Below, piece by piece: positions 32,578-37,322 of a DNA stretch of 64,000 bases. The notes beneath the pieces were generated by a model. The model had not been told where the DNA came from. It made no database searches and was given only the letters and a program-made list of their open reading frames with translations. The translations under genes were made by a program, and so were the position numbers. Position 1 is the first letter of the stretch. Each line of letters starts with the position of its first letter. The stretch comes from Basidiobolus meristosporus CBS 931.73 (lineage: Eukaryota > Fungi > Basidiobolomycota), in NCBI GenBank assembly GCA_002104905.1, contig MCFE01000025.1:124001-188000 (forward strand), read 5' to 3'.

Positions 32578-33056
32578 TCCCGAAGTTTCCCCATTGAGTG
32601 CCACCCATACTTCTGTACCGCACCAAAGCAAAATAAACCTTCAATTTTTAGCTTTATAGTTCGTCTCGCGAGGCCAAGAGAAGCCATAAATGTGGGCTGA
32701 TTAATGGCAAATTGCCTGTATTGGGAGTTGGATTAAATATGGAATCCGGGTCTGGAGCCCTCAATTACCTGGTATACATGCTAACGAATTTCCAGCAGTT
32801 GATCTTAGCGTTCACCCCTCACCTACATATTGATGGGTTTCCATTCTGGATTTATCAGCTCGTTCATGGACATTCCTTCGATCCTGTCTACAGCATCAGC
32901 GGTTTCCCCAATATTGCCAAACAAATGCGGGTGCCTTTTTTGCATTGGTGTTCAGCATGTCCAGGTGGAAATCCTCGGGATTTTTCGAATCCCGATTTCT
33001 TCATTACGAATGCGTCGAACGTATTTTCGAGGGAGTGGCTATGATTGGAACTTGCC

Positions 33057-33764
33057 ATGGTTTGGATTAAGCATCTTTCGAAAATTCCTCTAGCGACTCG
33101 TATTCAACTGCCGCCCTTCTCGCGGTGCTTGACCAGGGGGCGCCTCCCTCTCGGATCACCTAGGTATTTTTCAAACGGGCTCCCACTTTACGAGGCGTGT
33201 GCATCCAAAAAGCGCGCCCATCACGATCTAGAAAGTTTTTTAAGCTGCGGTTATGATCCAACCAGCAAGTACTTCGTTGGTACTATGTTTGAGTACCAAG
33301 TCAACGAGCTATTGAAAGCCTTCAACATTGAGACTCGTCGATGCGGTGGTTCGGATGATAAAGGTGTAGACTTGCGAGGCAGATGGATCCTCCCTGGGCA
33401 CATGCTGCCCCTCGTTGTGCAATGCAAGCACGAGAAGAAGAAGGTAGGGCCCAACTACGTAAGAGAAATCCAGGCAACAGTTGAAAGAGAATCCCCGGGG
33501 ACTCTCGGCATCTTGGTATCCAACAGGGGCTTTACGAAGTATGCGCTTGCCCAGTTTTCCCCTGCGAAAACCCCTATCGTGTTAATTACCGTAGACGAAA
33601 ACCTAGATATCAGTGGGTTTCATTTCAACCTGGCCACCGAAAAGTTGCTGCCCGAGTTGATGGTTACAAGGAAGTTTCTGCTTACCAAGGCGGGAGAGGT
33701 CTCCTGGAAGTTCGCTATGTTGTGGAATGGCGTAGAGTATTCCCCGAAGGTGGACTCCGCTTAG
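33057..33764 (+). CDS. RRG7: Rrg7-like mitochondrial PD-(D/E)XK-fold protein
   Basis: GTMFEYQV, GGSDDKGVDLRGRW, VVQCK, GPNYVRE, GILVS..GFT; basic N-terminus. Confidence 0.75.
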   Translation: MVWIKHLSKIPLATRIQLPPFSRCLTRGRLPLGSPRYFSNGLPLYEACASKKRAHHDLESFLSCGYDPTSKYFVGTMFEYQVNELLKAFNIETRRCGGSDDKGVDLRGRWILPGHMLPLVVQCKHEKKKVGPNYVREIQATVERESPGTLGILVSNRGFTKYALAQFSPAKTPIVLITVDENLDISGFHFNLATEKLLPELMVTRKFLLTKAGEVSWKFAMLWNGVEYSPKVDSA

Positions 33765-33945: not shown

Positions 33946-35344
33946 CTAGAGTAGACACAGTCGGATAAGGTTGTCGCCATCTTGAGCTTCGACCAGCTTT
34001 AGGTTTCTCAGAATCTGGATGGCGGTCGTATAATGATGGCGGGCTTCCTCGCCAGGTGGAAATTCCTACAAGGTGCGATTAGTCATGCTGTGGCATACGG
34101 TTGGGTGAGATTGCAACGAACCTTTTGCATGTGTTCCAAACGAATCGACTTGGATTCATCTTCGATCAACAGCTCCATGATTCTTGACATGGTGACCCCG
34201 ACGTTGTTTGTCGGGAAGAACAGCTTGAAGAGGCTCTTGATCTGCTGCGCAGAGACCACGGGATTCGATATTTCTTTGTCGGAGAGCTTGGATTGACAAG
34301 TTTTTAAGGCGTCCAGATACGTTTGCAGTCTCTGGCTGACTCGCTGGTCTACCAGCGTAAGGGTCTTGGTTTGGAAGTAGCCCAGATGTGAGTAGAGAAT
34401 GTCTGAGAGTTGGTCTATAACGCAGTAATTCCAGTTAGTCAATGCATAGTCTAGTCGACAATAAGCATACTGTACCATGGGAAATCAATTCCTCTAGACC
34501 CTCGTCTTGCTGTGATTTAGTGTTGAGCCTGGATTGCTCTTCAAGAGAGAGCATTTTCTTCTTGATCTGACTGTCAACCAAGTCGAGTTTGGATCTCAGA
34601 TCCTTGATCGTTTCTTGGTGCTTTGATGATTTCTGAGGCTTCGGTGGAGTAGGGTTCTGGGGATAACGGCTGTGTTATCAAGGGCGAGGTGCGGAACATC
34701 AATCTGCGAATACCTACCTTCGACAAGGATTCGTTCAATTCCGATAGTTCCTGCTCCTATTCTCACGGGGAATGATGTCGGCGATGATTCGAACGAATAA
34801 AAAAGCCGTGTGCCACGAACCTTGGATCTCAACTCCTCCTCGATCGAGGCCAGATTTCTTTGAACTTCTTGTCGGCTGTTCTTTAAAAGGTCTAATTTCT
34901 GCTTTAATGGCTCGCTGAGTCTCTTCTGCTGTAATAGGTGGCTCTTCTTTTTGGATTTTCTCTCCAGCTCCTTCTCTAAGGCGGACAGTTTGTTCTCCAG
35001 TTGGTTGTTGATGTCGTCTACGTGGGAGAACAGGTTTTCTATGTGAGGTAGAAGCTCTTGTGTGAGCGAAGTTTGTGCGTCTTGGATTTGCTCTTCGGTT
35101 AGCAACTCGTAATTCTGCTCACATAACACGGTTAATTCCAGCGTCTTGAAGCAAGCGACGAGAATAGAAGGCTAACCTGATGTAGTTCGAATATTTTGCT
35201 CAAACGGGCAGTGTCTCGTGTGGTGTACTTCATCTTTGCAATCGACCTATCCACAGAATCGGTGCATAGTTGGAGAGCCGTGATGCAGTCATCCAAGCTT
35301 TGCTCCAGTTGAACAAACTTCTCACGTCGGGTACGAACGCTCAT
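33946..35344 (-). CDS. SPC19: DASH/Dam1 subunit Spc19 homologue with a long C-terminal extension (about 364 aa, 6 exons)
   Basis: Exons 35344-35177, 35114-34821, 34756-34718, 34656-34476, 34414-34122 and 34065-33946 join in frame through GT-AG introns. The N-terminus LEQSLDDC..SI..TRDTARL..YELLTE..DA..L..ELLPHIENL is Spc19-like. Confidence 0.72.

Positions 35345-35632: not shown

Positions 35633-37322
<1,690 letters not shown>

Follow-up and report, generated by a model that had tools for sequence, protein, structure and literature searches.

A probable 364-residue orthologue of the DASH subunit Spc19 with a conserved C-terminal extension in Basidiobolus

The subunits of the fungal DASH complex (also referred to as the DASH/Dam1 complex) are short helical proteins, of which Spc19 is the youngest and is specific to fungi (PMC9998035), and Spc19 itself has been reported to be short (PMC9998035, PMC5439489). 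A locus of Basidiobolus meristosporus CBS 931.73, located in a 64,000-nt window (the whole stretch of DNA that was analysed; contig MCFE01000025.1, positions 124,001 to 188,000), raises the question of whether a single gene can encode a much longer Spc19 and, if so, what the additional residues might do. An initial reading of the DNA (the original prediction) had proposed that Spc19 is here joined by canonical introns to about 200 more residues, that these end in a winged-helix-like and possibly Ska1-like microtubule-binding module, and that a tandem 3' splice site in intron 3 switches between a short and a long form of the protein. Here, we describe the gene and its Spc19 part, the evidence tying the extension to it, the two acceptors of intron 3 and, finally, the nature and possible function of the C-terminal domain.

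The gene and its Spc19 part

SPC19 of B. meristosporus is a real gene with six exons and canonical GT-AG introns, encoded on the minus strand from an ATG at 35344 to a stop codon at 33946-33948, and its five introns are 56-64 nt each. The coding region, the features discussed below and the two neighbouring genes are as follows:

33946..35344, minus strand: whole SPC19 coding region, six exons and five introns, 364 codons plus stop
35344-35177, minus strand: exon 1, residues 1-56, where the Spc19 domain starts, matching positions 1-38 of the Pfam DASH_Spc19 profile
35114-34821, minus strand: exon 2, residues 57-154, coiled-coil part of Spc19, matching positions 42-128 of the Pfam DASH_Spc19 profile
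34756-34718, minus strand: exon 3, residues 155-167 (EQELSELNESLSK), at which the canonical Spc19 match ends
34717-34657, minus strand: intron 3, 61 nt, with TGATAAC at 34680-34674, branch A at 34675, and AGs at 34671-34670 and 34658-34657
34656-34476, minus strand: exon 4, residues 168-228, with the invariant NPTPPKP, then a helix (predicted, about 33 residues) and a variable, acidic linker
34414-34122, minus strand: exon 5, residues 228/229-325, 97 residues that open the conserved C-terminal domain
34065-33946, minus strand: exon 6, residues 326-364 and the stop codon, a helix followed by KLVEAQ, DGDN and LIRLCLL (putative wing)
33045-33764, plus strand: single 239-aa open reading frame, convergent with SPC19, the two stops 181 nt apart
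about 35633-37310, plus strand: multi-exon gene for an arginyl-tRNA-protein transferase (ATE_N/ATE_C), divergent from SPC19

The summed exon translations are identical, letter for letter, to a public 364-aa protein (P0001; ORY05451.1, B. meristosporus CBS 931.73), which carries the UniProt name DASH complex subunit SPC19. This agreement bears out the claim that canonical introns join the Spc19 part in frame to about 200 further residues. The whole-protein analyses used the database record P0001 as input, which was found via the search with exon 5 (100% identical), and the public protein models of both Basidiobolus species considered here may be computer predictions. On the ATE1 side, the start-to-start gap to SPC19 is about 290 nt and the arrangement is syntenic with Basidiobolus ranarum; on the other side, the 239-aa reading frame shares 71% identity with a B. 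ranarum gene whose annotation lists Pfam Mrr_cat and RRG7.

The N-terminal part of the protein belongs to the DASH/Dam1 subunit family Spc19, as its profile score lies above the curated cut-off and most of the profile is covered. Searched as a whole against Pfam DASH_Spc19 (PF08287), the protein scores 51.2 bits (cut-off 26.3), with residues 17-161 aligned to positions 1-148 of the 155 in the profile, and exons 1 and 2 searched separately give collinear matches across intron 1. Among proteins of solved structure, the top-ranking one is Chaetomium thermophilum Spc19 (6cfz chain I, E 0.003), a weak but collinear match in which residues 16-104 align with residues 2-90 of the chain. The identification of the N-terminus as Spc19 is thus upheld by both the profile and the best PDB match. 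A subunit of this family would further be expected to join Spc34 and eight others in the DASH heterodecamer. Judged by the profile match, a canonical Spc19 is complete within residues 1-167 and ends with exon 3 (39 nt, and of the same size in B. ranarum), and residues 168-364 are therefore extra.

The extension as part of the SPC19 gene

An orthologue of the entire protein is encoded by B. ranarum (P0002, K7432_002764; 371 aa), with 70% identity at 100% length coverage. None of the five introns differs in position or phase between the B. ranarum locus (L001) and B. meristosporus. The flanks of SPC19 are likewise shared, with ATE1 lying upstream on the opposite strand and the Mrr_cat/RRG7 gene downstream in convergent orientation. 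The argument from conservation and constraint covers these two species. Synonymous sites are saturated between them, and dN is 0.11 for exons 5-6 compared with 0.19 for the Spc19 exons 1-3; since the value for exons 5-6 is the lower one, the tail is by this measure under stronger constraint than the Spc19 part itself. Taken singly, exon 5 is 79% identical between the species (dN 0.12) and exon 6 is 85% identical; 20-residue windows within residues 221-320 are 55-95% identical, and the introns of the two orthologues are only 51-70% alike.

A conceivable artefact is that gene predictors merged a short Spc19 with an unrelated downstream gene in both species, a reading that would accommodate a tail without any family tying it to Spc19 and the presence of a Met at residue 202 of P0001. 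However, Met 202 is absent in B. ranarum, Met 249 of B. ranarum is Leu in P0001, and between residues 2 and 303 no Met is common to both species; with no shared start codon ahead of the conserved block (residues 221-302), the tail cannot be a separate gene with its own start. In addition, the frame is open from exon 3 into exon 4 in both species with indels in whole codons only, NPTPPKP (residues 168-174) is invariant and follows directly after the intron 3 acceptor, and the 61-nt intron between the two parts is too small to hold a terminator and a promoter. We therefore consider a merged annotation very unlikely. Judged from gene structure and reading frame, the extension of about 200 residues belongs to the SPC19 gene, and it is probably functional; the proposed fusion of Spc19 to these residues holds as one gene with a tail conserved in B. 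ranarum.

Another alternative accepts the long protein and adds a splicing switch, in which both acceptors of intron 3 would be used to make a 198-aa Spc19 of canonical size as well as the 364-aa form, at a regulated ratio. The intron ends in ...TGATAACACAG/CCGTTATCCCCAG/ (slashes mark the two acceptors), with ACAG at 34670 and CCCCAG at 34657. The original prediction was right that these lie 13 nt apart, and its arithmetic was right too: splicing to the downstream acceptor gives 364 aa, and splicing to the upstream one shifts the frame and adds 31 residues before a stop at 34574-34576 (167 + 31 = 198 aa), so that the spacing and the Spc19-sized product both suit a switch. The position of the upstream AG argues against its use. 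Besides the splice-site ends and the pyrimidine run ahead of the acceptor, the branch-like TGATAAC is the sole stretch of intron 3 common to both species, and the G of the upstream AG lies 5 nt past its branch A, compared with 18 nt for the G of the used acceptor; across all ten introns of the SPC19 pair, the distance from branch A to the used acceptor is 13-21 nt. AGs so near the branch point are skipped in splicing. Moreover, B. ranarum retains the branch-like motif but has no AG at the place of the upstream one. The upstream AG thus lacks both marks of a regulated tandem 3' splice site, retention in relatives and a spacing from the branch point that would allow its use. Its product would also carry 31 out-of-frame residues and, with its stop codon upstream of two introns, the transcript would likely be subject to nonsense-mediated decay.

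Additional AGs close to acceptors are common in this gene pair: of the 10 SPC19 introns in the two species, 4 have one at most 20 nt from the used acceptor and, on this count, the pair in intron 3 is within chance. Intron 1 of B. ranarum (L001 4169-4231), for example, contains two AGs, 5 and 7 nt after branch A, which are bypassed by the annotated model, the same situation as for the upstream AG of B. meristosporus intron 3. That AG is most likely an incidental dinucleotide too near the branch point and no regulated acceptor; its non-use is what we infer from these distances. The idea of a frame-switching 3' splice site can thus largely be set aside, and a regulated switch appears highly improbable. 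Our preferred reading, which is probably right, is that a single gene encodes the Basidiobolus Spc19 orthologue, a DASH/Dam1-complex subunit produced constitutively at 364 aa.

A separate observation concerns the end of intron 2 (34751-34757, minus strand), where the sequence TAG/GAGCAG/ is kept in both species. It provides a second, in-frame acceptor 6 nt into exon 3, at 34751, which would add or drop Glu-Gln; the upstream one of the two is used in both public proteins.

Composition, relatives and fold of the C-terminal domain

The extension is divided into two parts. Residues 168-228 begin with a proline-rich stretch, continue with one helix predicted to span about 33 residues and finish in a linker that is acidic and variable; residues 229-364 contain seven predicted helices, nine aromatic residues and an equal number of basic (16 K+R) and acidic (16 D+E) residues, for a net charge of 0. 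At the border between the canonical Spc19 and the extension, the TPPK at 34639-34650 (within NPTPPKP, 34636-34656, minus strand) fits the Cdk consensus S/T-P-x-K/R.

A phmmer search with exon 5 (97 aa) against 1.84 billion representative proteins found its own cluster only, no Pfam family matches residues 225-364 at E up to 10, and a two-species profile of the tail gave chance matches only against PDB sequences. In the ESM Atlas, a features search with residues 229-364 found nothing, and with exon 5 it returned unnamed eukaryotic clusters at 0.90-0.93, with EF-hand families below 0.9. An EF-hand in exon 5 was considered and dropped: inspected by eye, the putative loop that follows FKLF is of suitable length but contains none of the calcium ligands. 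A bacterial origin of the tail, raised by bacterial structural neighbours in the Atlas, was rejected, no sequence relative of exon 5 having been found. Since the phmmer search with exon 5 recovered only its own cluster, the C-terminal domain is, as far as sequence can show, confined to the genus Basidiobolus.

Long Spc19 proteins were also sought from the N-terminal side. A word search with the region 1-167 (among proteins of 200-637 aa) and another with the two-species N-terminal alignment (92-292 aa) gave nothing beyond Basidiobolus; both missed canonical Spc19 as well, so their blank result reflects a lack of sensitivity, not an absence of long Spc19. In the literature, a search for Spc19 together with Basidiobolus found no paper treating both, and a search for Spc19 with winged helix or early-diverging fungi found no long form described. 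The protein is already public as SPC19; what appears to be new is a conserved, undescribed and genus-restricted C-terminal domain, known from two species.

Residues 229-364 probably form a compact, mostly helical domain that is charge-neutral and highly conserved. AlphaFold2 models based on the two-sequence alignment are all-helical, with a mean pLDDT of 50.1 for residues 168-364 and 53.0 for residues 229-364. A Foldseek search of the PDB with the tail model gave no match at E 0.001 or better, and an ESM Atlas search with the AlphaFold2 model gave TM 0.44 or below. VIA-align, run on 48,161 chains, reached a Z of 6.2 at best, to generic helical repeats and below the noise level stated for helical models. 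The Atlas has its own, poor model (pTM 0.24), for which the neighbours of residues 229-364 at TM 0.42-0.50 include AAA_assoc_C, ScpA, Fic and BrxC-type proteins. Winged-helix or HTH modules occur in ScpA and in some members of the Fic and BrxC-type families.

These neighbours and the sequence pattern are the hints for a winged-helix-like end of the tail, which is possible. Residues 300-364 show the order helix, short strand (SIRL), helix, long helix and KLVEAQ-turn-LIRL, which fits a winged helix, and a 7-residue insertion in B. ranarum falls exactly within the putative wing. The originally proposed winged-helix-like tail is a candidate reading that the helix/strand pattern fits; no HTH or winged-helix Pfam family matches residues 225-364 at E up to 10.

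The stronger proposal, that the C-terminal domain is a Ska1-like winged-helix module giving DASH a second microtubule contact, would draw on the same pattern, on the indel between the species in the putative wing and on Atlas neighbours from winged-helix/HTH families such as ScpA. Set against it are the absence of a SKA1 match in Pfam at E up to 10, all-helical AlphaFold2 models of low confidence, structural matches that are generic and helical only, an Atlas model that is itself poor, and the balanced charge of the domain. In the Ska1 domain, tubulin binding relies on basic patches. With no SKA1 match and a net charge of 0, the Ska1-like microtubule binder is not borne out and we regard it as unlikely.

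Possible role and comparison with known systems

The domain is neutral and rich in conserved hydrophobic residues, and for this reason it would most likely serve as a module for protein-protein contacts, not as a charge-driven binder of microtubules or DNA. In the budding-yeast DASH complex, Spc19 and Spc34 pair through their C-terminal helices, and the resulting coiled coil lies at the outer rim of the ring, packed against that of Ndc80:Nuf2 (PMC7615550). If this geometry applies to Basidiobolus, residues 168-228, with the invariant NPTPPKP and its Cdk-type TPxK site followed by one helix, would serve as a flexible linker at the end of the Spc19 helix and would place the extra domain outside the DASH ring, beside Ndc80c. 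The invariant TPPK at the junction could regulate the domain. In this tentative model, a genus-specific globular domain at the tip of the Spc19:Spc34 arm might provide a contact that is missing from other fungi or supplied there by a separate protein, and TPPK might control it; candidate partners would be the microtubule, Ndc80c or some further protein of the kinetochore or spindle. The full model is possible but less likely than not to be right in all its parts. If true, it would represent a rare case of domain accretion in an otherwise minimal, all-helical DASH complex. A conserved extra domain where DASH meets Ndc80c would show the coupler gaining modules in single lineages, and the long Spc19 would provide a handle on kinetochore wiring in an early-diverging fungus.

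Three known systems are instructive for comparison. Like the Basidiobolus domain, the C-terminal winged-helix microtubule-binding domain of Ska1 (PMC3923297) is a globular module carried by an outer-kinetochore microtubule coupler of coiled-coil type; in contrast to it, the Basidiobolus domain is charge-neutral and without a sequence match, and its winged-helix-like pattern is a possibility. SPC19 of B. ranarum has the same architecture, intron positions and neighbours, and differs in the 7-residue insertion, which lies in the last loop, in one extra residue in the acidic linker and in an intron 3 without the upstream AG found in B. meristosporus. Canonical Spc19 (PF08287; 6cfz chain I, 151 residues) is, like the Basidiobolus protein, fungal, and the N-terminal part of the latter aligns with it nearly end to end; in contrast to the canonical form, the Basidiobolus protein is more than twice as long, with 197 further residues beyond the end of exon 3, including a conserved domain that is not a coiled coil.
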